Sequence record: MK250019.1
Direction: 5' to 3' (one strand)
DNA length: 64,000 bases
Within the stretch, counting starts at the first letter, position 1, and every line of letters starts with the position of its first letter. The notes under the pieces were generated by a model. It was not told the DNA's origin and made no database searches. It worked only from the letters and a program-made list of their open reading frames with translations. Position numbers and translations under genes: made by a program. This document shows positions 1 to 42,885 of this stretch, in pieces.

Positions 1-2357
1 CCACAATTCCAAAATGTCGGTACAATACATATAAGTGTTGCTAATGCAAAATATTTTTTCCAATATGGATAATCCTTAATTGTAATCGCATTTATATCAT
101 CTGGCGGTAATTGCTCATGTTTATTCATTTCATCTAATGCCCAGTTTTCATCTACTGGATATTCATCAGGTATTTCTGGAAATTCAACTTCTTCTGGAAA
201 ACTGTAATCACCTATACTTATATCATTTATTGAACTATCTAAATCTGCAGGATATATATTTTCAAATAAGTAATGTTGATAATATATGTTATCGATTGTA
301 ATATCCTAAGGAGTTGGCCACTATGCATATTCATCTAATTTATCTGCAAGATTTATTAATGAATTATAGCATTTATCATATGTACAATCTTCATATTCTT
401 TAATAACTTTATCCCAAAATGCTCTTATCTTTTTTGACTCTTCCTATACTAATTCTAAATATATATACGGTTTATCTTTATCAGTTTCTTTATAAGGATT
501 TTTCTAACTATCATATGATTTTATATATGTATACATAGTAGCTAACTATGAACATATTTCATTTGGCGCGTCAGAATCTTCATCAGAATCATATTTATAT
601 AATGACGCGATATAATCATATATCTGTTTGTATTCATTATCACCTGTATATTTTTCACCTGCATTCTAAATAGCTTCATCATCTAATTCCTAACCATATT
701 TTTCTTTATTATCAACCGTGAACTATTTAGTTATCTTTTCTTTATATGCTTTATTCTCATTCTATACATATGATGATATTAACTATTTAAATTTGTTAAA
801 TTCCTATTTAATTTTAGTTTCTGATACATTTTTTCCATTGATATTATTAAATATATGTTTAACATTATCATTGAATAAATTCATAAAATCTAACATCAAA
901 TCAGAATCTTTTCTCTATTCAACAATTACGCGTTTATTTATAATATCTGTTATAAGATTATAAAATTCCTATGAATACTTATCGGATGTTCCTGGTAATA
1001 AATTAATATTAGTTAATAAACTATAATAATAATTCTGATAACTATCAGCATCACCAATAGGTATATATGAAAAATCATCATCATATTGCTTTACATTTTT
1101 ATATACGTCTGAATCAATATGCTCATTAATAAGAAATTTACAGTCTGTATAATTTTTATCATATTTACATAATGGTAATGTATCCAATGATTTATATATT
1201 TTAATAATATCATTTACATATTTTTCACGCGCATCTAATAATCGCTTACTTTCTTTCTGTATTGCTTCATAAGGATTACTTGCTGTTTTAATTCTATTTG
1301 TTTGTCTATATGCCTTATCTTTAATTTCTCTTTTTACCTTCTTTCTTTTCCTCTTTTTCTTTGCACGTTTTCTCCATGATTTCATATCTGACTTTGTTAC
1401 ATCCTCTGCTATAATAGATGAACCGAATTCATCTTGAGACTCATTTAAATTCATCATAATAGAAGTATCAAAGATTGTTACACCAGTATTTAATTTATCA
1501 TTTACAATGTCAAATGTAAACAAAGATGTGTCATATTTTTTATTATTCTTAAATCCTTCCTTTTTATTCGCATTAATTATAGAAATATCTAAATTATCAT
1601 AACTTATATCAGATGAATCAAGATACCAACCGGAATAATATTGATAATTACCACTTATTGTATTTTTACGTGTATATGTACCTCTATATCTTCGTGCTAA
1701 TACGCAAGGTAATAAAGACTAACATAAATTATTTGTTATTAATGCATATAAATATCCTTCTTTCTGAAATTCATTATTAACTGCTGATATATCTTCAACA
1801 ACATTAAAATCTTCATTCATTCCAAGTAATGTATTTTCCAATACAATATGTCTGTTACATTTTGATGGATATAATCTGAAATAATCTTCACCATTATTTG
1901 ATGACATTACACGTCCTTTTTCAAATATTGATTTTAACGGTTTCATTTTTCCGTCTTGCTTTACAGAACCTATTATAGTATTGTTATCTATAGTATCACC
2001 AGGTTTTATATTTAATGTATATTCAACTGGTGTCGGATCTTTAACAGTTGCATCTGAAAATTCAATTATAACTCTTGTACTTGTATCTATATCAGATAAA
2101 ATATCAGGTACCTCTTCAGATGGAGTTACAATAAGTTTCCATAAATCTTTATCATTATATAAATTCTATAATACTGATAAATCAGTAGAACCAACAATAT
2201 CTTTAAAATCTGTTGTTATATCAGATTTTGCATAATCGACTGCACATAAATTTATATCATTAAGATTTATAGTCTGCTATCCTTCAATTTCATCTGTATC
2301 TATCGTTAATGCCTTTGTTATTAAGTCATCTAAATATATTTTCTCTTCTTTTGTCAT
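1..2357 (-). CDS. Large hypothetical protein (>785 aa, runs off the window edge), TAG-recoded
   Basis: Read codon by codon from ATG at 2357 (MTKEEKIYLDDL) to base 1 with no TAA/TGA, only TAG. Joins track ORFs 1719-1946 and 969-1523. ATGA overlap with the upstream gene stop. Confidence 0.8.
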
Positions 2358-5026
2358 GTGTATAAATCATAATCTTTTCCGTAACATCTTAATATCTGAC
2401 TACCATACAATGGTAATGATGAATCAGAATAATAAATTTCTGTATCTGCATCCTCAACTTTATCTAATCCTAATAAAGTACCGTCTTGATATTTTGAATC
2501 AGGATATTGAACAAATAAAGATGCATCATCAAAATAATTTCCTGCTTTATCTAAATCTTTTTTCATTGCATTTCTCTATTCTGTTATTGCATCTTGATCA
2601 ATATAAAGAATAGTTGGCAAATCCTATTTTATTATTTCATAATTAGATTTAGCATTTTTTAAATATAAATAAAGTTTTCTTGTATCAGGAATACCAATAT
2701 TAATTTCAACATTTGTACCTATACTTGTTATACTATTAGTTATATAATCATATAATTTTAAAGAACGAACTGTATAGAAATTTGTTTTTGATTTATTTGC
2801 TTTTTTAAATAATTTATTAATTGCAGCAATTACTTTTACCATACCTAATAGATTTCCCGATGAATTCGCTTCTACTTTTGCCTTATTGATTTTATAATTC
2901 CTAATTAATTTTAGTATAACTTTTAATTGTGGAAATATTTCTTTTAATATAGAAAATAATTCATGAACTAATTGAAATGTAGGTCTTTTAGTTGCTTTTG
3001 TTGGATCACCTGTATATTCTTCTTCTACAATACCTAATTCAAATTTTGATATTGCTTCTTCTGCTTCTTTTTTCTTTGCAGTTTCCTATGCAATCCTATT
3101 TGCTTCATCTATTGCATTTATTTGTTCATTTAATGTTTTATTAAAACCATCTAATTCAAAATGGATTTTGAAAGTGAATTCTAATAATTCAATAGTCTAA
3201 TCTTTTCTCATTACATAACCTTCATCTATTGCATTTATAATAGACAACACAGACGAAGAGTCAAATATTTTCGTACCATCTTTTTGATGTGCATTAGATA
3301 ACACTTTTGTTAACTGTTTCTTTGCTTTCTTTGTTGTCGGATCTGCATATATATTAAGAGTCATTGTAAACGTATTTAAATCATTCGTAAAGTCATATAA
3401 ATGTTCTGCCTTTATTTCTGTACTAACTGTAGTATTTGACACAACGTCAGCTGCTATATGGAGTCCTGATGAGATTGCTTGAGCTTCTATCTGATTCTAT
3501 AAACTTGTTAAATTACCTGAGAATTGATTAATTCCATCTTGAATTGCTTTTTCTAATGAAATAACTGCTCCATCAGAATCAAGTCCCATTTCAACAAGCA
3601 TATCCATAAAATCTTCAAACGAATCTATACCATCACTTAAAACATCTAAATCAACATTATTAAATTGACTTATTAACATCTTAATTTCATCTATTGAATC
3701 TTTTATTTGTATTATAATAAAGGAATTATATATTAAATCAGATGCGCGCGATAATTCATCCATTAGTGATTGTTTTATAATATCTGGATCAACATCCACA
3801 TTTATTTTTGATGATACAGTACCACCAGAAGAATGCTGAATACCTGTTTCTTTTTCTTGCTCTTCTTGTTCTTTCTTTCTACGTTTTTGTTCTTTACGCG
3901 CTTCTTTCCATGCTTTATACTTATGAATATAATCTGAACACATATAATATAATTCTGGTAATGTATATCCTGTATATTTAATACATTGTTCATTTATCAT
4001 TACCCATATAGTATTCATCAAAAGTTCCTATGCATCTTTTAACACTTCTTGCATTGAAGGTAAATTTGTAATTGCATCATTTATTGTTTCATAATATTCA
4101 TTTTCTAAGTCATTATAAATTGCTATATACATATCTTTCAATGATGTACAAATACTACCTATTGCTACTTTTGCACTTGGTAACATCTGAATATTCTTTG
4201 GAAACATTTTAATAATACCAGTGATATTAAATAATGTAGAATCCATAAGATTGAGAATAGACTATGCCATACCTAATGTTTCCTAATTAATACCTAAGTT
4301 ATTCATTAAATTACTAGTACCTCCTGCAATTAAAGACTATATAGTAACTTCAAGATATTGTGTTACTGCATCAGTAATTGCGCCAGATATTGCCATACCT
4401 GGCGCCTAGTTTATGTCAAGGTTATCAAGATCGACCTATTCTGCTTCTTCTACATTGCCAAATTCATCAACTTTTGTTATAGCTTTCTTTTCACCATATT
4501 TAGTTAAATCATTGTAAAAATTTGTATATGCTTTAATTAATTTCGGATGAGTCTATGTAATTTTTTTATATTTAGAAAATTCTGTATTTAAGTCATTTAA
4601 CTATTCTTTATAATTCTTTACAATTTGTTTAAGATTAGTTGTTAGAGCTGAATGTGGATCTTGTTTTTTTGCTTCTTCATATTGATCTTGATATTCTGTT
4701 AATTCACTGTTTACTTTATTAATTTCAGTTTGTAATGCGTTAACCCATGATTCTGCATCTTTTAATTCAGTTTTATAATATTCTATTCTTAATTTTGCAG
4801 TTTCTACTTTCTTCGCATATGGAAGTGTGTCATCAAACTGAACAATACCTACATCAATGATACCATAATCATATGCATTAATATCAACCATTTCAACGGT
4901 TGTCTTATGTTGACCTTTTTTCATATCTTCGGTCTCAACTGTACCTGCAGACATTTTTTTATTTGAAAAGAAATCATAAGAATTACCAGGTGAATTTGTT
5001 AAATCTATATCTAATATTGTTGCCAT
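2354..5026 (-). CDS. Large hypothetical protein (~890 aa), TAG-recoded, with coiled-coil segments
   Basis: One frame from ATG 5026 (MATILDIDL) to TGA 2354 once TAG is read through. Joins six track ORFs (4601, 4028, 3497, 3197, 2624, 2354). Confidence 0.8.
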
Positions 5027-5028
5027 AA

Positions 5029-5691
5029 TTAAAATACCTTTTCTTTTTGCATCATTGTTTTTAATGCCCAATACGAATCTACAAGATCATCAATACCTGC
5101 TATATAATTTGTTTTTGCTTTCATATAACCATTTGCAAGACAAAGACGAAGTTTTATATCATTATTCTACGCGATGTATTTTTTTATCATCTTTGTTTTA
5201 TCTGCGCGATCTTCTTTTGATGAACAACCTGCAGTTGCTTTGAGTGTGATAGGAGAATATGTATAAAGTCTTGTCAGATGATCACCATAATGTTCATATA
5301 TTTTTGATAATAATACTCCTTTATATGTCGCGAGATTAAGTGTAGCATCACCTTTTGATGCATATGATAATCCTTCTGAACATACATATAATTCATAATC
5401 TGTTAATTCGAATTTATTTGTTATTAAATCATCAATATCATTTATAATTAAATTTGCTAAATCAGTAGACCTGATAGTATGAATAAGAACTAACTGTGAA
5501 TTCTCTACTGTTTTTGTATCAACTGACGACATATTTCTATTAACTATTGAAACATCAGCATCTTCATACATTTTCTATTGTTTATTAGTTATTTTCAAAG
5601 GCCAAAAATAATGATAATACTAACCTCTGAAATATATTGTAGCTGCTGGTTTATTCATTGAAAAATCAAATCCTATTAAAACTTTATCCAT
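5029..5691 (-). CDS. ruvC: RuvC-like Holliday junction resolvase / RNase H-fold nuclease
   Basis: With TAG=Gln: MDKVLIGFDFSMNKPA...SEGLSYASKG...YSPITLKATAG...GIDDLVDSYWAL. The acidic D/E/D motifs match the RuvC pattern. Ends at TAA 5029. Confidence 0.7.
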
Positions 5692-6748: not shown

Positions 6749-7966
6749 ATGTAGACAGCTTAGGTTAGACAACAATATACAAGAGATGGTAAGCCTGTTT
6801 CTTTGGCGACTTGTATAGAAACTCTATATTTTGAATAGACATATAATGGTTAGGTTTATCGTACATCTCTTAATAACAGATTATTAGTAGTAGGAAATAA
6901 GTTAAATTCAGTTTCAAAAACAAATATCTCGGAATCATTAAATAAGGCATAGTTACCTTTCTATTATATAACAAAGATTGAATCTGATACTGCATCAGGT
7001 TTATACAGACTCGATGTTTCTCTTTATGCGATAGATACTGCAGTTCGCGCGACAGAAGTAATTGATGAAATTAAAACAACAATAGATAATAATTTAAATA
7101 CTCTTAATACTTCAATTAATAATGTAAATGCAAAAATTGACAGTTTTCAAAGATATAATGCATCTACATATCTTCCGTTAACAGGTGGAAGAATGTCTGG
7201 AGGTATCGTATTCGGAATGAAAGGTGGTGAAGAAAAGATTCAAGAACTTCCTGGTATTGGTTATAATGGTTAGAATCTCGTATTATCATGCCCTGATTCT
7301 GGATATATTTCATTTTGGGGTTCACTTTCAAATGAATATGGTGCAAATACACCAGGTATTACATGGTTAAAACCAACTATTACAGAAAATGGTAAAGTTC
7401 CTGTATTTAATTATGCAAATAATCAGTTAATGTGGAAAACATATAATGCCGGTTCACTTTCATATACAACTGCTGATTATAAGAAATATTATATTCTCGG
7501 TATTACAGAAGATTCATATAATGGACGTGATATTGGTGAAACAAAATATATTGCAGATGATGGTAATATTGAAACAAATGTTTATGTATCAAGAAAGAAT
7601 GTATATGCAAATGCGTTTTATGCATCATCTGATATTGAATTGAAAACAGACGTTAAGCATATTGATGCATCTACATATATTCCTGATGTTATTCAATTCC
7701 GATGGCTTGATACTTCTGAACTTTCTTATGGATTTATTGCACAGGATCTAGAAGAACACGGGCTTTCTTATTTAATGGATAAAGATGATCTTAAACATTG
7801 GCGTGTTAACTATTCTGCTGCTATTTCATTAGTTGTCGGAGATCTGTAGAAATCAAAGAAAGATCATGAATAGAGAATTTCAGATTTAGAGACAGAAAAT
7901 AAGAATTTAAAGAAAACATTAGAAAAACTTGAAAAAAGACTAGAAAAATTAGAAAAAAGTAAGTAA
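6749..7966 (+). CDS. Tail fibre protein with C-terminal intramolecular chaperone (Peptidase S74) domain
   Basis: ATG TAG ACA start after an in-frame TGA. Has the YLPLTGG fibre motif and YASSDIELKTDV...YGFIAQDL...VNY followed by a coiled coil. Ends at TAA 7964-7966. Confidence 0.85.
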
Positions 7967-7968
7967 AA

Positions 7969-9885
7969 ATGGCATCAATTTATGATTTAAAAATATTCAA
8001 GCTAAACCGCCTTAAGTATGAGGAATTATGGAATGATGCTATTGCATGGGTGAAAAAAACATACAATGTATCTGAACAACAATTTACAATGGCTTCACCT
8101 TTTGCATAGTTACTTTCTGTAATTTTACATCTCGGACGAATGATTTTCTATTACATAGAAGATTCAATAACAGGTTTAAATATAAAAACAGCATATAGAC
8201 CTGATCAAATCAGAGGTTTAGCAAGATTAACAGGACATAATGCAGGTAGAGCAATTGCTGCTCGCGGTGCAGTTAAAATTGTTTATTATGATACTGGTAA
8301 TCAAGATTTAAATGGTAATGTATGTTTCATACCAAATAGAACAAAATTATTATGCGCGATTAATGGTGCAACATATACTGTACTATTTGGTGCTGATACT
8401 GCATAGATAACAATGACTGCTGGTAATTATATAACAGCAACAATTATACAAGGCACAGTAAAATATCAGGCTGCAACATCAACAGGTAATAAATGGCAAT
8501 CATATAATTTTACTGAAAGAAATTATGCAGATATAGATGAGTATTTTATAAATGTATATGTAAATGGTGAATTATGGGATAGAATAGAATCATTTATAGA
8601 TGCTGGTTTTGATTAGAAAGCTTGTGTTGTTAAAACAGGTATAAACGGAGGTATTGACGTTACATTTGGTGACGGTAAAATGGGTATGATTCCAGTTGAA
8701 GGCGCAACTATTTATGTTGAATATATTGTTACTGATGGTGTAACCGGTAATCTTCCAAAACAGATATTAGATTAGGATTAGTATTTTGAAATACAAGGAA
8801 CAGGTTATGCAACAGATGGTTCTGAAATTTCACTTGCTGATAATTTTAAAGTTCAATGTGATACAGATGTAATATTTGGTTCTGAGTCAGAAGATATTCG
8901 ACTTACATAGTTAATTGCACCGCATACATCCAGATCATTTGTTCTCGCGAATGAAATTAATTACAGATATTTCTTTAAGAGAATGAATATGTTTTCTACA
9001 ATAGAAATTATAAAAGGATATACATAGAAGCAAGCTAATTATATGGCATAGCTTAATTATGATGTATATAATACAATGTATAAGAATACATTCAGCGACT
9101 GGCAAGATGCTGTTTCTGTATATGGAGAACAATCAGATGAAGCAAAAGAGTTATATAATAATTTACAGGATATATTAAGTAAACGTAATTTTGCACAATA
9201 GCAAATAGAAGATACAGATCTTGCAGATAATACCGTATATCTTTTATTAATTCCTGATTTAACAAAGCGTATTTCATCATCATCTAATTATTTTACTGTT
9301 GATGAATCTGTATTTACATTATCTACAGATGAACAGAATAATATTATTAATTTAATTGATAATTCAGGTTAGAAAATAATTACAGTAGAAAATAAAATAC
9401 TTGAACCAAAAACACCAAGATTTGCAGTTAATACATAGGTAAAAATATGGGAAGGCTATAATTTATAGAGTATATATTCTGCATGTTTAAATGCGTTATC
9501 TAATTACCTTATAAAGTTTACGCGCAAAGATATTATTCCGTTATCTGATATTACTGCATTATTTGAAGCAATAGATGGTATCGATTCAGTAAAAGTATGG
9601 TTTGATGCAGACGTTGAAAATGAAAATATATATTGTGAAAGAGGTTTTTATGGTATTGATTCTTATGGTGATATTATTTTAACAAGAACATATCAAGATT
9701 ATAATGGGAATTCAAAGGATGTTAGAGATATATTACCTTTGATACGCGGTGGATTTACTTCACCTGATGGTGTTGAATATTCGGATACACAATCATTAGA
9801 TTCATTATCAGCATTTAATATGCAGTTAATAGGTTATACACAAAATAATAAATTAACATTAGAAAACTTTAAGACAATAACATAA
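7969..9885 (+). CDS. gp6: Baseplate wedge subunit, T4 gp6-like (638 aa)
   Basis: Continuous with TAG=Gln. N-terminal SPFAQLLSVILHLGRMIFYYIEDSITGLNIKTA and central VTFGDGKMG...IYVEYIVTDGVTGN match gp6/baseplate-J patterns. Adjacent to gp25. Confidence 0.8.
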
Positions 9886-10614: not shown

Positions 10615-10624
10615 TAATTGAAAA

Positions 10625-13600
10625 ATGAGTAATATAGATCAAAGAGATAAATTAGTTTTTTATACAGAAAAAGGATATGAAATTCCCGTTGAAAAAACAT
10701 ATAGTATTCAATGGGAAATAATACCACATGTAAAGTTAAAATCATATTTTCTTCATAATCCAAAAGGTCATTTCATGTATGATATTGATGATACAGATCA
10801 TATATTAACTGTTGAATTTGATAATAAAGGTTTATTTAATTATGTTGATAATATAAAAGTTAATACTGGTATTATAAATAATGAAACAGGAAATTCTGTA
10901 GAATTTGCCATTAATAATATTACTGAATTAATATTGTTTAATAAAGAATATACATATAAAAAATCAAAAGGAACAATATTTAATAGAAATGAAAAACGTT
11001 GGGAGGAAGATTTTGATGTTCTTAAGGGAAATATTTATAATACAGTAAGATTAACATTTAATACATTGGTTGGTTCAATTACATAGGATTATCCTGTAAA
11101 TTATATATTCGAAACATGTACAGTAGAAAATAATAATAATTATAAAAATTTAACTAATTTAACACTTACATTATTAGATAATAATAAAGAAGCGCTAGGT
11201 TAGAAAACATTTGTTAATTATCTTATTGTAAATAATTTTAATAATTATGAAGATTTATTTCCATGTGTAAGGTATATAGGTTCAATTACATAGGATAAAG
11301 TTTCTACAGAATTCGTTGCTGCCAGCACATTTATAATATTAGATGAAAATGGTGATAGACCTAATTTTAATATTGCAACAGATGAATATTATTTAAAATT
11401 TGAATTTCAGAAAGATTCTGAAATGAAATTTATTTCATCTGATAGTGTTGCTAATATTATTTGGGAAGACTCACATGAAGTTAAGTCAAATATAACATAG
11501 GACGCACATAATCCGTTTAATAACGATACTAATACGCCAATATATTTTTCTGTTGGTTTCTAGACAGTAGTTGAAGGATGTTATCAAAATATAATGGCAA
11601 TGTATATTGTAAGTAATAATACAGGCAAGAAATATATATTAGGTTTATTTACATTCTTAACTGAAGTAGTTGGTGAAGACGAAAGATATAGAGCTTTATT
11701 AGGAAATCTAGGTATACCAGATCCTGTAAAATATCCAAATATATTTAAATCATAGGATCCTGATGAACAAGGAGTTGATTGGACATTAATTAATGATAAG
11801 TCAAAAGAACTTATGATTAATTATGATAATATATTCCCATATGTTGGAACCTATAAAGCATTAATGGGAGCTATTAAATTCTTAGGATACGGTGATTTAA
11901 TATTTAAAGAATGGTATAAAATAAAAGATTAGAATAATAAAGACAGATATGTAACTTTATAGACATATGATTTATAGAAAGGTGAATCTTTAAATACAAA
12001 GTTAAAGAAAATAGGTGTTACATACGGTGAATTCGAACGTTATAAAAAAATAAACAGATTATCAATGATATATCATCTTAATGAAATAGATGATGAAACA
12101 GGCGAATATCTTGATATGTATACACGTCGTCTCGATAATCCAGCAAAAGATAATCCTACAACTGCACCAGAATCTGGTTTATATAAAGCATCATATAAAG
12201 ATACGCATCATTAGGATTTATCAGATAACTTTACATAGAAACAATCTGTATTTTTCTAGTTACCTATAACAAAAACTATTTATGAATATAGAACAGATGA
12301 AATATTGGCAAAACTCTTTTCTGTTAAATAGTGGTTGGAAAAATATATTTTAGGAGTTAACTGTTTTATATCAGATATATGTGGAGAAGGTATAATAGTA
12401 GAACGTTTAAAAAATCAAGCTTATGTTACATAGCATCATCTTTAGGATATTACTACAATATCTAAAGTAACACCAAAGATTATAAAATATAATCCAAATA
12501 TATATGTTTCAATTGATTCATCAAATAATGAAATTCATACAGATACTATATTGAATTCTTCTCATTTAAATTCATCAATAGATGATGAATGCATCAATGA
12601 TATTTTATTTAGAAATTCAACAGCAATATTAAGATGTTCATTAAATGAATTTGATTCTTTAACAATTGGTGATTATGATGATTTCGAAATAGAAGATTTT
12701 ATTATAGATACATCAACACCAAATGGTAGCATAGGAACTGTTTATATTTCCGCACCATTGGAAACATTAGTAACTGTAAATGAATATCAATTTCAGTTAA
12801 CAAATAAAAATGTATCTTCTGGAACACTTGCAGAATTTACAGATACAAGTTATATAAACAATCCTATTCTTATATAGGATAATGAAATCTTATTTTATGA
12901 TGATACAAAGAATTTCACAAAAATTGATAATAAAGAATTGCCTATTATAGAAATAACGCAAGGTAATTTAAGATACTGTCATGGTGATTGGAAATCTAAT
13001 ATCGCTTATTCTATAAATGTTGTTTCTGATTAGAAATCAGGAAAAGAATATTATGCATTATATGAAACAGAAACAGATGAACCTGTTTATAAAGATTTTC
13101 AGAAAGTTATTTTATACCCAATGGAATCAGAAAGACATTATGATAAGTATAAATTATATTGGGCATAGAGAACTGATAAGAAAATAAGTTCAAAACACTA
13201 TAATGGATTAAATTCTGAATTTATATATACATCTTAGAATAAGTGGAATGTACCTCAGATTATTATTCGTAATTATAAATGTGGTAATAATGATGAATTA
13301 CTTCCAGGCGATTATATTCTTGAAATTATAGAAGGACGTATATTATTCAGAAATAAACAATCTGATTTAAATATCAATAATGGTAAAGCATATGGATGTG
13401 AATTAGAATTCGGTGAAGAATTAGAAAGTAGTGAACAACCTATTAATGTAAATTATACATATATGTCTGATAGAGTTCCTATATATACTATAGATTCTTT
13501 AAATGATGTTTCAACATAGGAAGGTATAGAAAAATGTGTACATACAAACAAATATGTGGATGTTTCTGTAAATAGATTAGGTAATTATACAGTATCAGTA

Positions 13601-16039
13601 AATGCATATGATTATTACAATAATATATTTGTTAATCAGAGTGATGATATAACAACAGTTACAACAAAACCTATAAGTCTCGATATTATTCTTAATGAAT
13701 CAGAATTAGTTAATAATAAAGATTTTTATCATTATAATGCTAAAGGTACTTATATGACTAATAGTGAAACTAATACATTATTTGATAGTATTAATAAAAA
13801 TGGAGATTATCCAATTTATCCATAGACATATAGAATATATGATATTGATCCTATTGTAGATAGTCCAAATACTATAGAATATGATAATATATCTTATGCA
13901 ATAGATACACCTAAACCAGGAAACTTTATTATATTTAATAACTTTACAGAACAAGTTTTAAATATAACAAAAACTAATGATATATATAAATTTACATTAG
14001 TTGATGAAAGTCCTAATAGAGAAATTTTACAAAATTCATCTCATGTAGGATTATGTATATATGATTGTATACAAAAAGATATATTAGTTGATATATATCC
14101 GTTTGAAGTACAAAAATTCTATACATTTGATTCTTCAATAGTAGATTCATCATATTATCGTTTTGATGCAAATAATTCTTATATAACAGTTAAAGACACA
14201 TCTAATATGTTAAATGCTAGCGCATTTAAAGATATTTATGAAAAATCAATTGAATCCTCTGTTAATTCATCAATTAATTCATCTGCATTTTTTACAAATT
14301 CTATAAATGCATATGTATATACTGCTAATGAACATGTATTTGAACCAAATGATGAAATAATATTAGATACATCAAACTTATTATCTTATATTCATACATT
14401 TAATAAAAAACAGTATTTCATGAAGAATTAGGTTATCAAAATTTGTTATGCAGATGAAACAGTCATACATAATGATTATACTGATAAAGCTATAGATAAT
14501 GAAACTGCATATCGTATTATTAATGTTAATCAAAATGAAGATAAAACATTTACATATACAATAAATGGTTTAATAGATCTTGATAAACTTAATAATAAGT
14601 TATATCATAATAATGCATGTAGAGATATGAGTACAGGTGGTAAGTTAATTACTAAAAAACCATATAAATTAAAAATGTGTCCAGCACATTTAAGAGCTGC
14701 ACAGTATGTATTACGTGTAAATGGTTATGGTGAGGAATTTACATCAAGATATAACAAAGGTGTAGTTTAGAGAACAACTGTAACATATGATCCTAAATCA
14801 TTATTATTTGATAGTTATCTTGATACAACTTATTCTGCATAGATATTTGATTATGATCCTAAATTATTATAGAATATATGGATAAATGCAAAACTTCAAT
14901 ATGAAGATGAAGCACTTTATATCTATAGAGATAAACCTGTTACAATATCAAAAGGTAGAAATATTATATTAAGACCTGATACTTCATAGAATATATTATC
15001 TGAAAAGTTTAATGGTATAGATGTACCATTAAGAATTCATTGGAATTGGAAATCTTATATTATAGATGATCATGAAACATTTGAATCAGAACAAGGTTTA
15101 ATAGATAAGCAAGTTGTATTTAAATCTGCAAATAAAATATTATCGATTAAACCAGAATTATTAGGTTCTCAATCGCCTAATATGATATGTTGTGATGTAT
15201 ATGGAAATCGTGTTATAAATGAAGCAGATGGATTTGTATATGTAGATGCAGATGGAAGTAATAATACTGTTGGTAAATTCGAAGAAGGTACAAGAAATAT
15301 TATGTATAAAGATGTATTTATTGTTGGTTTTGATGTATAGTTTAGTCCATTAAATACATTATCTACATATGGAGAAACTGCAACATATACAATAAGTGAA
15401 ACTGGTTCTTCAAATGAAAATACAAATAATATATCATTTAAATATAAGATATATTATAGTGATGGTACTATTGTTGAAGATAAAGGATGTAATTGTAATT
15501 TACTTACATAGAAAGGAAATGTTTCTAAAACAAATAAGGTTAAATTTACAGTTAAAGAAGCAACAGAATCACATAAATCTAAAGTTGGTGAATTACAATG
15601 TAAATTAACTATTGATAAAAAATCAGATAGAGATATTATTCAACATGAACAAATTCATACATTAGATATTAAACAATATGGTACATCAATAACAACAAAT
15701 ATATATGATTTATCATTTAATGTAAAAGATATTCCGTCAGAAGGATTAGATAATATAGAAGAATATATTATTAGAGATTATATTAAAGATATAAAATATA
15801 CATTAATAAGAAGTGAAGGTGAAATAGAATAGATAGAATCGCCAACATTTGAAAATTCAATGTTAAAAATAAAAGGCTTTAAAATAATTCATAATCAACG
15901 AGGAATAACCAATAATATACCGGAAAACAAATCAGGTAGAAAAGAGATAGGTATTTTACAATTAACAGTATAGTTTAATGTACATGGTATTTAGAATGAT
16001 ATAGAAACAACAGGAATGTGTTCTATATATCAATTATAA
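10625..16039 (+). CDS. Very large baseplate/tail structural protein (1804 aa), probable gp7/P2-gpI-like wedge
   Basis: Track ORFs 10625, 12551, 13556 and 14207 share a frame. Read directly to about 12500 with only TAG interruptions; the rest inferred from frame concordance. YVGTYKALMGAIKFLGY resembles the gp7/gpI motif. TAA at 16037. Confidence 0.7.
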
Positions 16040-18966: not shown

Positions 18967-18984
18967 TCTGTTTGCAAACCATTG

Positions 18985-19056
18985 TGCTCTATACAGGGAT
19001 CGAACCCGTGATCTGGAAGTTTAAAATTTCCTGCTGTACCGCTTAGCTAATAGAGC
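18985..19056 (-). tRNA. tRNA with UUA anticodon (ochre/amber suppressor-type)
   Basis: GCTCTAT/ATAGAGC acceptor, GCT-AAGCGGTAC-AGC D arm, GGAAA-TTTTAAA-CTTCC anticodon arm, ACGGG-TTCGATC-CCTGT T arm, discriminator A. No encoded CCA. Confidence 0.85.
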
Positions 19057-19539: not shown

Positions 19540-21026
19540 AAATAATTCACTTATAACATATATAACTTTAATATTATATATGACATATATATGATTTGTC
19601 TGAAGTGAATCTAGAAAACTACAGATTAAACTAATCTATAGAAAGTCTATATTTAATTTTAGACTTTTTGAAGAAGTAATATAGTTCAATCAAATCCTTG
19701 TATGTAGGTTGTAAATTAAATTCTTCCAACGACTCAAGATACAACTTATTAAACATACTCAAATTCGGTCTTATTATATTCTTTTTAATTTCTTTTGTTT
19801 TACTTATATATTGATTATAAAACTCATAACCACGCCTACCTATTTCTATTGATGCTAATATCATATCAGGTAAATTTAATGAACGATATAGAAAATTACC
19901 AATAAAACTTGAATATTCTGGTTTAACTTTTAATAACTTAATATTATGAATATTACAACGTTTAGTTAAATTATTCACAAATGTTGTTCTACACCATGAA
20001 TTATTAACCAATTTATTAAAATATACACCTAAATCTTTATCTGAAGTTTTGATATTTAAATTCTCTATAGAAATAAGTTGACATTTATAATATATAGATT
20101 TATTAATTATATTCTTTACAATTTGTAAAGTCTCATAATTTCTCTTATCTGAAATATATTTTCTTTCATTTGAATCAGATGAATATCCTTTATTCTTTAA
20201 ATTAAAATCTTTATCATTCAATTTTTTAATTGAATAAATACCTGATTTGATAACATCAAATTCATTTTCAGATTTCCAATCAACAATAGACCATCCTATA
20301 TAATTAGGATTTAAATCCAAAGATAGTACTCTATTTTTTATAAATTTAGTTTCATAATTATAAACATCATTTTCTTCAAATATCACATAAATATATTCTA
20401 AATCTAATTTATATGCAATCTTTATTTCTTTTCTTTCTTGTTTCTAATATAGTTTAGATAATATCTACTTTCTTTTATTTAATCCAATTAACCATAAATT
20501 TATTTTTGTATGTTTATTTGGTTTAAATATAATATTTTCTAAATCTTGTTCTATGTGAAATTTTCTATTTCCTTTAACTGATTTATTAACTATTTCACCT
20601 ATTGAATATAAAGCCGATAATCTTTTCTACTTAAACTATTCTTTTGAAATATTGTTCTTTAATCTCTAAAAATAATTCTTCTTACTGCCAAATATAATTT
20701 TCTATTTCTTTGGTATATCATAGAAAGAACATTGAATAAACCAACTATCTAACAAATATATATTGTTTAATGTTTTTATTTGTTGTTTTATATCTTTCTA
20801 AGATTTACCTTCCTATACTCTATTGTATACAAAATGCTGTACAGAACTATACTATTTCATATAATTCCGTATAATATCTAATGATTGTTCATCCGTTCGA
20901 TATTTAATCTTTAATACTTGCATTTTTAATTGTATATAATATTATATTCTTTTATTATTTATCTGAATAATTTTAAAAAATAATAAATTCTTATAAAATA
21001 TAAATTATAAGGTATTATTATATTTT
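19540..21026 (-). mobile_element. TnpB-only IS200/IS605/IS607-superfamily element #2 inserted in the RNA ligase
   Basis: Lies exactly between ligase codons ...GGC GTG TAT and AAT ATT AAG. Carries one RuvC nuclease gene and no tnpA. Ends are uncertain by a few bp. Confidence 0.75.
19574..20923 (-). CDS. tnpB: TnpB/Cas12f-like RuvC nuclease (449 aa) with 11 in-frame TAG
   Basis: MQVLKIKY start at 20923. RuvC-I VLSLDLNPNYIGWS, RuvC-II ISIENL, KVKPEYSSFIG, RuvC-III PDMILASIEIGRR. Stop TAA 19574. Confidence 0.8.
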
Positions 21027-38732: not shown

Positions 38733-39314
38733 TTAATATAAATCTTCATCATCATTTTCATCATACAAATAATCATCAGAATCAGTTTCTTCATCATATT
38801 CATCATCTTCTTGAGGATCTCCAGTATATATTTCTTCTACATTATCATTATCAATATAAAATGTGAATGTTCCATCTTCATATGATAACTTTATAGTATG
38901 AGAATCTGCATCATCTACATCAATAACTGTTACATCTTTATCATTTCTAAGTTCCTCAATATCCTTACAATATGAAGAATCAAAGATACCTAACGCACCT
39001 GCATCTACTCCATATGTTTTACCAGACATTGAATCATATGAACCATCACCAAATGCAGTTCCATGAACAAAACCGATAATATTATTATCATCTGTGATTA
39101 TACCATCTTCATAATCTGGTCCCCAACAATTTTCATAAATATCATCATCTAAAATATAACAAGGATCACCAATAACCATTGTTAATTTTTCACCTTCTGT
39201 ATCTATTGTTTCAGTGTAAGAATCTGAACTGTTACTATAACTTTCATTAATTTTTGTTTTAACAGATTTTGCAATGGAAGTTATAATATTTTCATAAAGT
39301 TTTTTACTATTCAT
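38733..39314 (-). CDS. Acidic hypothetical protein (GDPCY...GDG...VDAG family)
   Basis: VIGDPCY, TAFGDGSY and GVDAGALG motifs. Confidence 0.7.
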   Translation of the reverse strand: MNSKKLYENIITSIAKSVKTKINESYSNSSDSYTETIDTEGEKLTMVIGDPCYILDDDIYENCWGPDYEDGIITDDNNIIGFVHGTAFGDGSYDSMSGKTYGVDAGALGIFDSSYCKDIEELRNDKDVTVIDVDDADSHTIKLSYEDGTFTFYIDNDNVEEIYTGDPQEDDEYDEETDSDDYLYDENDDEDLY

Positions 39315-39437
39315 AAATTAATATATAATTTATTTTTATATTTATATTTATTTGCTCATATTTTGATTAATATATAGTTAGCTTAGTATTTATATATTTT
39401 ATTAATTACATGATGATACAGAGCAAATATAGTATAA

Positions 39438-39475
39438 AAAATGAGATATAACTATTGGATGTTATATCTCATTTT
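39438..39475. terminator. Intrinsic terminator closing the ETNSSS operon
   Basis: AAAATGAGATATAAC...GTTATATCTCATTTT. Confidence 0.75.
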
Positions 39476-39481
39476 ATTTAA

Positions 39482-39787
39482 TTAACTATCATAACCATAT
39501 CGTCCAAATGCATGAACAATTTCACCTCCTGGTGTTTTATATGATTCATCATATGTTTCCATATCATAATCATTAAAATAATCATCATATGATTTATAAT
39601 CATCATCTGAATCATATTTCTCTTGATTTGATTCATACTCTTCTCTTGTAATGAAAACCTCACTATATTTGCCATATAGAAGTTCACCATTTTCCCACTT
39701 TTTATATTCTGAATCAGAACACATAGTAAGTGTATGGACAGAACTTGAATTGGTTTCAAATACACCTTGTCTTACAGATACTTTCAT
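39482..39787 (-). CDS. FETNSSS-motif protein 5
   Basis: MKVSVRQGVFETNSSSVHTL. Confidence 0.85.
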   Translation of the reverse strand: MKVSVRQGVFETNSSSVHTLTMCSDSEYKKWENGELLYGKYSEVFITREEYESNQEKYDSDDDYKSYDDYFNDYDMETYDESYKTPGGEIVHAFGRYGYDS

Positions 39788-39809
39788 TTTATTAAATTTA
39801 TCTTAATTT

Positions 39810-40370
39810 TTAATTACCTTTATCAAAATCCCAAGATGAACCAAAATCTGGTGTTTCTACTTCTTCATCAACATTATCATTACCTGTTGATACATAACTA
39901 TTATAATCAAACAAATAATTCAAAAGTCTTTTTTCATTAAATACTGTTGACTCAATAAAATCACCAAGGTCTTCTGTATGGTCAATATAACCATCATCTT
40001 TTTCACCTTCTGCATTCTTACATACTATGTAAGTATATGTGTCACCATTATCATATGTATGAGTATGCATAGAAATATCATCATAAACAAATACGGCTTT
40101 AATTCCATATTTTGCAAGTGTTTCTTTAATTGCTTGCATACATTCTTTAACTTTATCAATATTTTTCCAATAATATCCAATAATGGCTTCCCATAGATAT
40201 GATGCTTTATCTGATGTATTGAAATAGATTTCAAAATCCCATCCAAAATCTCCTTTATCAAATCTTACTGCATCTGGATATTCAGTAATATTTGATTTCT
40301 TAATAATAGAAATTGCATGTGTAGAACTTGAATTGGTTTCAAATACACTTTGTCTAATTTGTACTTTCAT
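39810..40370 (-). CDS. FETNSSS-motif protein 4
   Basis: MKVQIRQSVFETNSSSTHAI. Confidence 0.85.
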   Translation of the reverse strand: MKVQIRQSVFETNSSSTHAISIIKKSNITEYPDAVRFDKGDFGWDFEIYFNTSDKASYLWEAIIGYYWKNIDKVKECMQAIKETLAKYGIKAVFVYDDISMHTHTYDNGDTYTYIVCKNAEGEKDDGYIDHTEDLGDFIESTVFNEKRLLNYLFDYNSYVSTGNDNVDEEVETPDFGSSWDFDKGN

Positions 40371-40396
40371 TTACTTTATTTTTAAAAATTAATAGA

Positions 40397-40753
40397 TTAA
40401 CATGGTTGATATGTAGAAACAACAATAGTAGAATCAACACCATTAGAGTCTTTTATAACCTCTGTAATAGTATCCCAACCTTCATCCGCATAATGATAAA
40501 TATCCTTCCATACTTCATAAGGGATATAATCATAGTCATCGAACCAAATATCTTCATCTACATTATTAGGATCATAAATTAATTGATCCTTTGGGACATC
40601 TTTTACATTAATAAGTTTGTCTGCTGATGGTCCATTTTCAATAACCATTTTTCCTTCTTTAAATGCTTGCCAATCACTACCATTAAATAATGCTAATGAA
40701 TGTGTAGAACTTGAATTCGTTTCAAATACGCCTTCTCTAATCTGAATTTTCAT
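40397..40753 (-). CDS. FETNSSS-motif protein 3
   Basis: MKIQIREGVFETNSSSTHSL. Confidence 0.85.
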   Translation of the reverse strand: MKIQIREGVFETNSSSTHSLALFNGSDWQAFKEGKMVIENGPSADKLINVKDVPKDQLIYDPNNVDEDIWFDDYDYIPYEVWKDIYHYADEGWDTITEVIKDSNGVDSTIVVSTYQPC

Positions 40754-40756
40754 ATA

Positions 40757-41428
40757 TTATAAAATATAAATTTTTGGCTTATTATAAGGTGCATATGCAA
40801 TATCTTGAAATGTAATAATATTTTCATCTTTCATTACATCATCAAAGAATTTATCGAACTCATCTACAGTAATCCATTTATTATTACCATGTTCAGAAAA
40901 ATATTTTACATGTGTATCTGTATTTTCTATTGTTTCTGTATATACACCATGTTCAAGATTATTGATTACATGTACAATATCATAACCTTTACTTTTTGTA
41001 TATTCTTTAATTCGTTCAACAAATCTTGCATATACTTTAGTATCTGTTAGCAATGTATCATGATATTCATTTTCAAAATAAGTTGAACCATATGCATCTC
41101 TATTATAATCTTCTATATAATATGCATTTTCATTTAATGCCATTGCAATATACTGAAGTTTTGCAATCCAGTTTGAGATAATATAATAAACATTTCCACA
41201 TTCATCACCATTTTCAAAATATATGCCTGTAAGTGTAAATGTTTTATTTTCTTTATCAATACAAAGTAAAGGATTAAACATATCATTATCAATGTTTTCC
41301 TTATATTGCTCTATAATAGCTTTGAATATATTATCTCTAACTGAATTTATAGAACCTTTAGTAATTTGCAAACTATGAGTAGAACTTGAATTGGTTTCAA
41401 ATACTCCTCTCCTAATTTGTATTTTCAT
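40757..41428 (-). CDS. FETNSSS-motif protein 2
   Basis: MKIQIRRGVFETNSSSTHSL; start placed at the motif Met. Confidence 0.85.
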   Translation of the reverse strand: MKIQIRRGVFETNSSSTHSLQITKGSINSVRDNIFKAIIEQYKENIDNDMFNPLLCIDKENKTFTLTGIYFENGDECGNVYYIISNWIAKLQYIAMALNENAYYIEDYNRDAYGSTYFENEYHDTLLTDTKVYARFVERIKEYTKSKGYDIVHVINNLEHGVYTETIENTDTHVKYFSEHGNNKWITVDEFDKFFDDVMKDENIITFQDIAYAPYNKPKIYIL

Positions 41429-41430
41429 AT

Positions 41431-41928
41431 TTAACAATATTCATAAAAATTTTTATATTTAGAACCTTGTGGAAGATCATTATCACTGCTAAAATAATTA
41501 TTATCAAAACATTGACATGATGATTTATTGTTAAAAATATATCCTAAAAGATATTTTTCAAATGTTTCATCATCAACATTATTATTGAAAATATTATCCA
41601 ATACATCTTCACACCAACCACTTGATTCATATTCACCATTTTCATCAATAAGGTAATCAAACTTAATTTCATATTTTGAAATTACCTTATTAATACGGTT
41701 TTTGCAATAAATGAAATTTGTTAATGAATCATTCATTGTCATGTAATTAAACAATGAATCAAGACGTTCCTGAAGTTTATCATTTGTTTGACGTTTATCC
41801 CATGGTATACCAAGTTTAAATGTCATACCTGCATATTTTTCAATATTTACTGGTTCCAAACATATAGTTAATGTATGTACGGAACTTGAATTTGTTTCAA
41901 ATACACCTCGTCTAATTTGTACTTTCAT
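41431..41928 (-). CDS. FETNSSS-motif protein 1
   Basis: MKVQIRRGVFETNSSSVHTL. Confidence 0.85.
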   Translation of the reverse strand: MKVQIRRGVFETNSSSVHTLTICLEPVNIEKYAGMTFKLGIPWDKRQTNDKLQERLDSLFNYMTMNDSLTNFIYCKNRINKVISKYEIKFDYLIDENGEYESSGWCEDVLDNIFNNNVDDETFEKYLLGYIFNNKSSCQCFDNNYFSSDNDLPQGSKYKNFYEYC

Positions 41929-41942
41929 AATTATATATTATA

Positions 41943-42830
41943 TTACTTCTTGCTATATTTGTTTTGAATAAAATGAAACATTTCATCCATTGTCTTATCA
42001 CCAATAGGGAATCGCTCTTTTGAAATTGAATTCTTTGCAAATTCACCCTTTACCATATCAATATAGAATGTATAACCTCCGTCATCACCCATATAGAATT
42101 CATCCCATTCCTCTGATGAAAGAATACGCTGTACTTTAAGCTGTTCAATCGCAAGATTATCAAAACTCAAAACCTTAAAATATGTCTTAATCTCATCAAG
42201 ATTATCAAAAAGATATTTTGTATTATTCTTAATGAATTCATCATGTTGCTTATGATAGTTAATACCACGCTGCAAATCTTTATATCCAAGGAGCAATACT
42301 TTCAAATCATTATCACGAAGTTTTTGAATATCAGATTCTTTTAGAATTCCAACAATAGTATGTAGAACAGTATTAGGAATACTATTCATCTTTTCAATAA
42401 GTTCATCTGTAGGATGAATCAAAGAAACACCAATACCATAAACATACTTATGTTCAGACCATGTTTTCAATTTATCATAGTTTCTCAAGAACTGATTCTG
42501 ATTAACAGTAATGTTTGCATACACCTTCTTCTTCTTCAAAAATTCAAGGAATGCAACAAGATCAGGATGATCTAGATCATTGCCATTAAGAGCAATCTCT
42601 GTATATGGATGAAGAGTATTAATAAAAGGATATGAAAACAAGTCACCGTGTTTCCCTTCTGGTGAGCATCCCTCGTAGCAAAACTGACACATCTCTCGAC
42701 ACTTATCTGTTAATTTGCAATCTACGTTCTCAGAAAATGACGGAATGAATTCGTTATCCTCTGTTCGACGTATCTTAGTTCCATCACTCAAAATCGTTAC
42801 AATGTAATTACCATTCTTATAACTTGGCAT
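41943..42830 (-). CDS. Radical SAM enzyme (no SPASM domain)
   Basis: CREMCQFC CxxxCxxC motif, EIALNG and ANITVNQ; 295 aa. Confidence 0.9.
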   Translation of the reverse strand: MPSYKNGNYIVTILSDGTKIRRTEDNEFIPSFSENVDCKLTDKCREMCQFCYEGCSPEGKHGDLFSYPFINTLHPYTEIALNGNDLDHPDLVAFLEFLKKKKVYANITVNQNQFLRNYDKLKTWSEHKYVYGIGVSLIHPTDELIEKMNSIPNTVLHTIVGILKESDIQKLRDNDLKVLLLGYKDLQRGINYHKQHDEFIKNNTKYLFDNLDEIKTYFKVLSFDNLAIEQLKVQRILSSEEWDEFYMGDDGGYTFYIDMVKGEFAKNSISKERFPIGDKTMDEMFHFIQNKYSKK

Positions 42831-42877
42831 AATTCTTTTTATTTAAAAATTAATATTTGTGTTTAAAACTGATATTA

Positions 42878-42885
42878 CAAAGATA
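42878..42885 (-). promoter_or_regulatory. Bacteroidetes-type -7 promoter element driving the radical SAM operon
   Basis: ATGTATCTTTGTA about 50 nt upstream of the rSAM ATG. Confidence 0.65.

Follow-up and report, generated by a model that had tools for sequence, protein, structure and literature searches.

A radical SAM enzyme and co-encoded proteins sharing an N-terminal tag in a giant gut phage and in other mobile elements

A giant gut phage carries a gene for a small radical SAM (rSAM) enzyme followed by five genes whose products all start with the same 18-residue tag. This pairing of enzyme and tag recurs in hundreds of phages and mobile elements, it is sometimes fused into one protein, and we found no paper that describes it or assigns it a function. 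The stretch of DNA that we analyzed (hereafter the window) comprises 64,000 nucleotides of the Prevotella phage Lak-A2 (MK250019.1). According to the reading that we tentatively prefer, the tag enters the active site of the rSAM and is modified, although a rival reading, in which the tagged proteins are interchangeable subunits of the enzyme, follows closely behind. The chemistry and the biological role are not known under either reading.

Results

The gene array in Lak-A2

The array was first noticed in a sequence-only reading of the window, and that observation is confirmed: all six open reading frames are present on the minus strand. The rSAM gene (41943-42830, 295 aa, with CREMCQFC) is followed by tag genes at 41431-41928 (165 aa), 40757-41428 (223 aa from the ATG; an alternative TTG start adds 3 residues), 40397-40753 (118 aa), 39810-40370 (186 aa) and 39482-39787 (101 aa). 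The gaps between the genes are 14, 2, 3, 26 and 22 nt. All six genes start with ATG and end with TAA, and none has an in-frame TAG, as the sequence-only reading had claimed. Each tagged product begins M-K-x-Q-I-R-x-G-V-F-E-T-N-S-S-S-[TV]-H. In a six-frame scan of the window, the pattern [ED][TS][NDQ]SS occurs only five times, each time at one of these five N-termini. Pairs of paralogues share 14-19 of the first 20 residues but only 72-85% nucleotide identity there, with synonymous differences; therefore, the similarity is held at the protein level and is not recent gene conversion.

The array had also been described as one operon bounded by a host-type promoter and a terminator. A 15-bp hairpin flanked by A/T runs, and followed by a T-run, is found at 39438-39475, directly after the last tag gene, and it is terminator-like on both strands. 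The possible promoter is a TATCTTTG box (42885-42878, minus strand) that fits the Bacteroidetes-type -7 consensus TAnnTTTG and lies 48 nt upstream of the rSAM start codon. However, TANNTTTG is not enriched in the window (120 found, 123 expected), so this site alone is no evidence of a promoter and its function is unproven, and a sigma-70 scan found fewer sites than in shuffled sequence. Contigs from four metatranscriptome libraries cover most of the operon at 90-99% identity, but they cover the flanks as well, and contigs cannot show transcription or strand. Whether the tagged proteins are early-expressed payloads, as had been suggested, was not shown.

The bodies of the tagged proteins

The proposal that the bodies form two subfamilies was partly confirmed by hhalign comparisons of the bodies only. 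The 186-aa protein (39810-40370) is the canonical "long" type. It matches phrog_28997 (E 7.3e-21, residues 2-166), whereas the other four tag proteins match that family only through the tag. Its invariant or nearly invariant residues are E11, N13, S14-16, H18, G43, W44, Y58, D130, H131, T162-G-N-D-N166, K184 and N186. The 165-aa body (41431-41928) is a degenerate relative of the long family (probability 74%, E 2.7e-5) that is found only in Lak-like loci; it has lost the YIDH, TGNDN and KGN signatures, although its tag is intact. The 101-aa protein (39482-39787) is the canonical "short" type, with a conserved Cys23, Y, W and GEL, an acidic linker, and a C-terminal GD..VAFG.YG.D motif, and its family is present in 53-59 of the viral loci. 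The 118-aa body (40397-40753) is a divergent relative of the short family (probability 69%, E 4.3e-5). The 223-aa body (40757-41428), which had been placed more loosely with the longer proteins, is Lak-specific, matches neither family and has no significant Pfam family. The sequence-only reading regarded these proteins as variable payloads, but the 186-aa protein is the canonical member of a very large family (5,576 clusters at 50% identity, 2,527 of them at E<=1e-10) with its own invariant body residues.

Scans of the tag proteins and of several alternative bodies against Pfam, NCBIfam and PADLOC gave nothing significant. The AlphaFold2 model of the long protein is confident (pLDDT 91.4), but residues 1-12 are unplaced (pLDDT <50), while the rest of the model averages above 90. 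The second half of the motif (S16-H18 onward) begins the first core strand of this model, which is formed by residues 16-23 (S-T-H-A-I-S-I-I). No known fold was matched: Foldseek against the PDB gave no match with E<=0.001, a wide VIA-align search gave a best Z of 3.3, and BFVD returned only an uncharacterized family member. The ESM Atlas returned the family itself and a 261-aa viral cluster annotated as Tad2-like (TM 0.55), a lead that was not followed, and a feature search of the Atlas added nothing. We also considered an SGNH hydrolase because of the Ser and GNDN motifs, but the order of the blocks and the fold do not fit.

The radical SAM enzyme

The rSAM (41943-42830) matches phrog_16999 (E 1.4e-34). 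The three cysteines of its CxxxCxxC motif, C44, C48 and C51, are invariant in 46 split homologues and in the 120 sampled fusion proteins, and no other Cys is invariant. E78-x-A80-x-x-G83, which corresponds to the GGE-like SAM-binding motif, is conserved. The AlphaFold2 model (pLDDT 94.9) has the partial TIM-barrel fold of the superfamily, aligns to many rSAM structures at Z 8-17 and carries a conserved N-terminal three-strand beta element. The Lak protein scores only 12.1 bits against the 29.5-bit gathering cut-off of PF04055, whereas its fused relatives score 46-52 bits, and this profile alone does not decide the matter for the Lak protein. The nearest structures are SkfB (Z 17.3, 265 residues aligned from residue 1), SuiB (Z 16.9) and EpeE (Z 14.9), and the peptide/protein maturases ChlB, PqqE and anSME are also among the closest. 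Viperin, BlsE and MoaA, which act on small molecules, are close as well (Z 12-14). Sequence searches against solved structures with the rSAM sequence, and with the long-family and rSAM profiles, gave nothing.

Linkage and portability of the tag

The co-occurrence of motif and enzyme had been named beforehand as one of the points on which the interpretation could fail, and tag proteins were not found to be common without the rSAM. Of 83 viral loci found through the tag, 78 also hold the rSAM, mostly adjacent and on the same strand, and the figure is 66 of 79 for contigs of bacterial and archaeal genomes. Conversely, 78 of 79 loci found through the rSAM hold a tag gene, and in the one exception the rSAM lies 788 bp from the contig end. 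One rSAM serves one to six tag genes. Only the rSAM, the long family (~186 aa) and the short family (~101 aa) are shared across the viral loci; the next families occur in 17 loci or fewer. The pairing holds across phages of Prevotella, Microcystis, Salmonella, Rhodothermus and Thermus, and it persists down to rSAMs of about 26% identity (RM378 p106 and phiYS40 YS40_162).

The tag is attached to at least three unrelated widespread bodies, namely the long type, the short type and a Cys-rich family of about 170-320 aa, and to lineage-specific ones. In four loci, the only tag gene beside the rSAM is not long-type. Therefore, the tag does not depend on the active site of any one body. The Glu of the tag is at residue 10-12 in 319 of 321 distinct proteins, and R(-5) and F(-1) are 100% and 97% conserved, although the search pattern did not require them; the Gly is not invariant (55%). 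All three Ser positions use both the TCN and AGY codon families across the family, which points to strong selection on the amino acids.

A large family, including gp146c of the cultured Salmonella phage Arash, fuses tag, long domain and rSAM into one protein, and this fusion is widespread (726 hits). In the fusions the tag is still N-terminal, and the Glu is replaced by Ala in all of the sampled fusion proteins that carry the tag, while the rest of the tag stays invariant. A comparison of split and fused rSAMs, made to find a partner residue for Glu11, gave no clear complementary change.

Discussion

We consider the array to be a self-contained, mobile two-part system of phages and other mobile elements, which consists of a dedicated single-cluster rSAM and one to six co-encoded acidic proteins that begin with the tag R-x-G-phi-(E/A/S)-T-N-S-S-S-x-H. 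Lak-A2 carries an expanded version with two long-type proteins, two short-type proteins and one lineage-specific protein. In the mechanism that we propose, the flexible, basic first ~12 residues of each tagged protein would dock on the rSAM, possibly by strand pairing with its conserved N-terminal beta element, and would place the T-N-S-S-S-x-H segment beside the [4Fe-4S]/SAM site. The 5'-deoxyadenosyl radical would then abstract a hydrogen from one tag residue and install a covalent modification that matures the protein. The anatomy, the near-obligate linkage, the portability of the tag, the natural fusions and the peptide-maturase-like fold of the rSAM model rest on our analysis, whereas the insertion of the tag into the active site, the modification and its chemistry are inferences. 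The interpretation offered by the sequence-only reading, that the Ser-rich motif is a recognition or modification tag or nucleates a complex with the rSAM, is partly supported: the motif is a shared, portable element coupled to the rSAM, but whether it is modified, or is instead a docking or active-site arm, was not shown.

The linkage, its persistence down to distant rSAMs, the sharing of only three families across the viral loci, the unrelated bodies, the position and codon usage of the tag, its perfect retention on the decayed body of the 165-aa paralogue, the low confidence of residues 1-12 in the long-domain model, the peptide-modifying neighbors of the rSAM and the constancy of the tag in fusion proteins, where recruitment is no longer needed, all favor modification. 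However, no modification or binding has been observed. Predictions of a complex between the rSAM and the 186-aa protein, a check similar to one that had been suggested in advance for the N-terminal peptides, scored 0.76, 0.25 and 0.27, with the median below the mark, and this counts neither for nor against binding. Moreover, the rSAM lacks auxiliary clusters and any conserved Cys hydrogen donor; therefore, it cannot use the chemistry of SPASM/twitch maturases or of EpeE-type epimerases.

The fusions are also a ground for the close rival, which we regard as possible and only slightly less likely. A widespread fusion is more typical of an accessory domain than of a substrate; a fused substrate implies single-turnover self-modification. 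In this view, the tagged proteins are interchangeable subunits of a heteromeric rSAM enzyme, or a domain of it in the fusions; the tag plugs into the rSAM and supplies catalytic or ligand-binding residues (T, N, S, S, S, H), and the variable acidic bodies choose the true substrate, which could be a nucleotide, a nucleic acid or a host protein. F-box proteins, or split versus fused RRE domains, are the analogy. Accessory domains of other rSAMs likewise exist in fused and split forms, the replacement of Glu by Ala would fit a residue needed only for intermolecular docking, and the invariant polar body residues of the long family (D130, H131, TGNDN, KGN) suggest a ligand pocket and a function beyond carrying a tag. 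In addition, one rSAM serves several tag genes, the genes usually lie among replication and nucleotide-metabolism genes, and small-molecule rSAMs are also close in fold. However, no candidate third substrate or pathway gene is conserved next to the module, and the best structural neighbors act on peptides. Docking interfaces normally drift, and absolute invariance of six small polar residues across rSAMs of 26-35% identity is unusual for an adaptor peptide.

It is unlikely, in our view, that the tag serves another process in a pathway where the rSAM works without touching it, such as capsid targeting with cleavage after Glu by a prohead protease (as for T4 internal proteins), autoproteolysis at Asn-Ser, or donor-strand-type oligomerization among the tagged proteins. 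The strictly N-terminal location and the strand-like, basic and flexible first 12 residues fit such a role; phi-x-E and N-S are known kinds of cleavage site, and arrays of paralogues with one constant end resemble packaged effector sets. However, linkage to the rSAM is near-obligate in both directions, the fusion puts tag and rSAM in one chain, and the module occurs in plasmid-like and prophage-like bacterial contexts without nearby structural genes. The change of Glu to Ala in the fusions would also remove a Glu-specific cleavage site while the rest of the tag is kept.

Least likely, and already disfavored, is an ordinary tandem paralogue family whose conserved N-terminus is just a structural core strand and whose rSAM is only a syntenic neighbor. 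The first core strand of the long-domain model supports this reading. However, the same tag heads bodies with no detectable similarity to one another, residues 1-12 are not packed in the model, the linkage spans phages of very different hosts, and fusions exist.

A more far-reaching reading, which we hold to be doubtful but not excluded, is a previously unrecognized, phage-wide protein-tagging system, in which the TNSSS-x-H tag routes structurally unrelated acidic proteins to a dedicated minimal rSAM that installs a new kind of post-translational modification, such as a Ser/Asn-derived cofactor, a cross-link or a backbone change, and in which phages diversify the tagged set. What the tagged proteins would do for the phage is unknown, and takeover or counter-defense is a guess. 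If the tag is modified, this is a new rSAM chemistry on whole proteins by a minimal enzyme without an auxiliary cluster, and the portable recognition tag could be useful as a tool. If the tag is instead an active-site arm, it is a new way of building modular rSAM holoenzymes. A very large protein family, for which we found no Pfam or NCBIfam model, is almost always paired with, or fused to, one distinct rSAM clade.

The gene pair itself is already represented in known families. Ma-LMM01 has the same pair, gp130 (phrog_28997) and gp128 (phrog_16999), but phrog_28997 has no assigned function and phrog_16999 carries only the generic label "Fe-S oxidoreductase". We found no source that describes the tag, the linkage or the fusions, and neither the Arash paper nor the Ma-LMM01 transcriptome paper mentions these genes.

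Compared with RiPP/protein-modifying rSAM maturases that have an N-terminal recognition domain (SkfB, SuiB, CteB, PqqE, ChlB), the system shares the best structural matches, an enzyme encoded beside several substrate-like genes with a conserved N-terminal part and a variable remainder, and a partner element that occurs both split and fused, as PqqD/RRE does. However, the SPASM or twitch auxiliary-cluster cysteines are absent, and the Lak protein has no Cys after residue 55. Residues 1-30 form a sheet of three short strands and lack the helices of an RRE; the SkfB and SuiB alignments start at residue 1, but the correspondence of residues was not inspected, and the presence of an RRE-like leader-binding domain is left undecided. 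The partners are proteins of 92-400 aa and not short precursor peptides, the long type is predicted to fold into a confident globular domain, no protease, exporter or transporter family is conserved across the loci, and all NCBIfam maturase models score far below their cut-offs.

Among enzyme-maturing rSAMs, anSME (formylglycine in sulfatases) and the glycyl-radical activases (PflA, NrdG) act on an invariant short motif of a folded protein, as is proposed here. The size and the single cluster resemble the activases, and anSME is a structural neighbor (Z 13.2), whereas PflA is more distant (Z 9.3). However, the tag is at the extreme N-terminus and contains no (C/S)xPxR motif, no RVxG glycyl-radical motif appears in the long or short alignments, and anSME needs two auxiliary clusters that are absent here. 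Therefore, the analogy with anSME or a classical RiPP drawn in the sequence-only reading fails on defining features.

Viperin and prokaryotic pVip are likewise single-cluster rSAMs with no auxiliary cluster, and viperin (Z 14.0) has the lowest rmsd among the top hits, 3.4 A. Fused relatives give partial pVip hits in PADLOC and NCBIfam, but these cover only the generic first ~100 residues of the rSAM core, and the best scores 38.3 bits against the viperin_w_prok cut-off of 180. The Lak rSAM gives no PADLOC hit, and viperins have no tag-bearing partner.

The operon and its N-terminal tag

The region is 100% identical to Prevotella phage Lak-A2 (MK250019) and 99% identical to Lak-A1 and Lak-C1, whereas the Lak-B genomes match at about 72%. 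On the minus strand, a 295-aa ORF (41943-42830) that contains CREMCQFC and encodes a radical SAM (rSAM) enzyme is followed by five ORFs of 165, 223, 118, 186 and 101 aa, and the successive genes are separated by 14, 2, 3, 26 and 22 nt. All six genes start with ATG and end with TAA, and none has an in-frame TAG. Many other long frames in the window are open only if TAG is read as sense, for example those at 10622-16039 (+), 7963-9885 (+), 2354-5086 (-) and 19574-20941 (-), one of which comprises 1,805 codons with 31 TAGs. This pattern fits the stop-codon recoding reported for Lak phages, with some genes written in the standard code. In addition, ARAGORN calls a suppressor tRNA at 18984-19056 (-) with the anticodon TTA, which is cognate to UAA and possibly to UAG by wobble.

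A 15-bp hairpin with flanking T-runs follows the last gene. A TATCTTTG box, which the sequence-only reading had taken for a host-type promoter, lies 48 nt upstream of the first gene, but that pattern is no more frequent in the window than expected by chance. Just beyond the terminator-like hairpin, at 38733-39314 (-), lies a gene for a 193-aa protein with very acidic ends (phrog_20074, E 1.4e-14; weak DUF4241 hit), which has its own TATATTTG box at 39424-39431 (-). This protein has no tag and is not conserved with the module.

The sequence-only reading described an rSAM gene followed by five genes that share a nearly identical N-terminal motif, and this observation holds. Each of the five products begins M-K-[VI]-[QS]-[IV]-R-x-[GS]-V-F-E-T-N-S-S-S-[TV]-H, and a six-frame scan of the 64 kb finds the core pattern only at these five N-termini. 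The 5′ ends are 72-85% identical in DNA and carry synonymous differences, so the similarity is not the product of recent gene conversion. Among 321 distinct tagged proteins collected from related loci, the Glu lies at residue 10-12 in 319, and Arg at -5 and Phe at -1 are 100% and 97% conserved, although the search pattern demanded neither. Furthermore, all three Ser positions use both the TCN and AGY codon families, which shows strong selection on the amino acids.

The bodies that carry the tag

The 186-aa protein is a full-length member of a large family (phrog_28997) that has no assigned function and no Pfam model. Invariant or nearly invariant residues run along its whole length: E11, N13, S14-16, H18, G43, W44, Y58, D130, H131, T162-G-N-D-N166, K184 and N186. 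An exhaustive profile search with this long family finds 5,576 cluster representatives at E<=0.001 and 2,527 at E<=1e-10. Grouping of the bodies without the tag gives the long family, a short family (~101 aa, to which the Lak 101-aa protein belongs) and three clusters found only in Lak-like loci. The division into short and longer bodies made in the sequence-only reading therefore holds in part: the 165-aa protein is a degenerate long-type that has lost the YIDH, TGNDN and KGN signatures, and the 118-aa protein is a divergent short-type, but the 223-aa body matches nothing.

In other genomes a third widespread body family carries the tag, along with several singletons, and none of these bodies has a Pfam domain. 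The members of the third family are mostly about 170-320 aa long and have a conserved C-terminal Cys-rich motif (C..F....L..C.CGFE.Y), possibly a metal or cluster site; examples are L153:8931-9890, L150:8731-9684, L162:4119-5063 and L164:8001-8942 (locus labels of this study, with positions in each locus), and there are 16 more. Tagged proteins of every body class are strongly acidic, with median pI values of 4.45-4.75 and 71-93% below pI 5, whereas ORFs of the window have a median pI of 5.6 and the tag itself is basic.

Linkage of the tag to the rSAM

Phage Ma-LMM01 encodes gp130 (long-type, with the same tag), gp129 and gp128 (an rSAM, 35% identical). Frequent occurrence of motif proteins without the rSAM had been named in advance as evidence that would count against a functional link, and this condition is not met. 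Of 83 loci found through the tag (80 from viral contigs and three from metagenome contigs that encode long-family members), 78 hold an rSAM homologue, which is mostly adjacent and on the same strand, beside arrays of one to six tag genes. Of 79 loci from species-representative bacterial and archaeal genomes, 66 hold it; most of these genomes are gut MAGs, they include CPR and Methanobrevibacter bins, and many of the loci without the rSAM are short or truncated contigs. In the opposite direction, 78 of 79 loci found through the rSAM carry at least one tag gene, and the exception has the rSAM 788 bp from the contig end.

Across the viral loci only three families are shared, namely long (84 loci), rSAM (78) and short (59), and the next family is in 17 loci. 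Putative DNA methyltransferase genes, judged from their N-terminal sequence motifs and not scanned against Pfam, lie within a few kb of the module in about 13-15 of the viral loci (for example L018:11871-12521 and L020:7846-8628), although this may be lineage synteny rather than function. The third, Cys-rich family is often the only tag gene beside the rSAM, as it is in loci L158, L161, L164 and L165. The constant pair is therefore tag plus rSAM, not one particular body.

The rSAMs of the thermophilic phages RM378 of Rhodothermus (p106, L003:5019-5789) and phiYS40 of Thermus (YS40_162, L004:2304-3257) are only about 26-38% identical to the Lak enzyme, and yet they also sit beside proteins with degenerate tags, L-S-T-N-S-S-S-S-H and S-M-T-N-S-S-S-A-S; the phiYS40 tag has Ser at the position of the tag His. 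In another relative, a Lak-like contig of 553,716 bp (IMGVR_UViG_3300045988_166570, L010:5931-8431), the rSAM gene is fractured at the third cluster Cys. An N-extein plus intein N-half (144 aa, C-L-V-P-N...T-P-N-H) is followed by about 1.2 kb that holds an HNH-like ORF (126 aa), and then by an intein C-half plus C-extein (281 aa, ...N-I-L-V-H-N|C-Y-E-G-C). This arrangement looks like a split intein with a free-standing homing endonuclease gene, and reading TAG as Gln does not join the pieces into one frame.

Natural fusions

Gp146c of Salmonella phage Arash (476 aa, annotated 'methyltransferase') consists of tag, long domain and rSAM, in that order, in one chain. A search with this protein gives 726 proteins at E<=1e-5. 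The 120 sampled hits are 435-570 aa long and cover 92-100% of the query, and some are from records assigned to Methylobacterium, Thermoanaerobaculia and Promethearchaeota. In these fusions the tag reads R-x-G-F-A-T-N-S-S-S-[ST]-H-S, and among the 115 of 120 that carry it in their first 60 residues, R, A, T, N, S, S, S and H are 100% conserved. Fused loci carry no additional tag genes and sit in phage-like or plasmid-like contexts. Given the bidirectional linkage and the fusions, we consider it unlikely that the tag is a capsid-targeting or cleavage signal, a strand for donor-strand oligomerisation, or a mere core strand.

Predicted structures

The model of the long domain is confident (pLDDT 91.4) except for residues 1-4 and 7-12, which are below 50, and S16-I23 forms its first strand. 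The model has no match in PDB (no Foldseek match with E<=0.001; best VIA-align Z 3.3) and none in BFVD beyond its own family. In the ESM Atlas it aligns at TM 0.55 (129 residues) to a 261-aa viral cluster annotated as Tad2-like (PF11195), which may be a distant relative or a fusion with an anti-Thoeris-type domain.

The rSAM model (pLDDT 94.9) has a three-strand N-terminal element, a partial TIM barrel and a C-terminal extension. Its nearest structures are SkfB (Z 17.3), SuiB (16.9), EpeE (14.9), viperin and BlsE (14.0), ChlB, PqqE, anSME, CteB and MoaA. Only the three cluster cysteines are invariant, so there is no SPASM or twitch cluster. Residues shared by split and fused rSAMs include G17, K19, R21, E34, D37, H88, N106, T108, S136, K184, D224, Y256, D258 and S268.

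Substrate or subunit

The tag is strictly N-terminal and chemically invariant, is portable to unrelated bodies, is kept when the body decays and when it is fused, and is not packed on its own domain. Moreover, it almost always accompanies one rSAM clade whose nearest structural relatives modify peptides. These properties come from the sequences and models, whereas what follows is inferred. The simplest account is that the tag enters the rSAM active site. Co-folding of the enzyme with each N-terminal peptide had been suggested beforehand; the complex prediction, made with the rSAM and the 186-aa protein, gave no verdict. We tentatively favor the possibility that the tag is then modified, without holding it more likely than not, and we consider it only slightly less likely that the tag acts as a docking and catalytic arm of interchangeable subunits. 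The natural fusions and the invariant residues of the long body favor the subunit model, the multi-paralogue arrays and the peptide-maturase neighbours favor the substrate model, and the invariance of the tag fits either; we cannot choose between the two. The proposal of the sequence-only reading, that the motif is a shared recognition or modification tag or nucleates a complex with the rSAM, is thus supported in part.

Comparison with known systems

We found no curated model, fold or paper that covers the tag proteins or the pairing. Although rSAM enzymes with co-encoded partner proteins are a known arrangement, this pairing with tagged partners appears to be an undescribed form of it, and there is a real chance that it represents a new protein-tagging chemistry. 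The enzyme is a radical SAM protein according to its motif and predicted fold; the Pfam score of the Lak copy is below threshold, which by itself leaves its family assignment undecided. However, it lacks the defining features of SPASM/twitch maturases, of anSME with sulfatase, of a glycyl-radical activase with its enzyme, of viperin and of classical RiPP clusters. In our view the enzyme works most like a protein maturase, but it is not a member of any described family.
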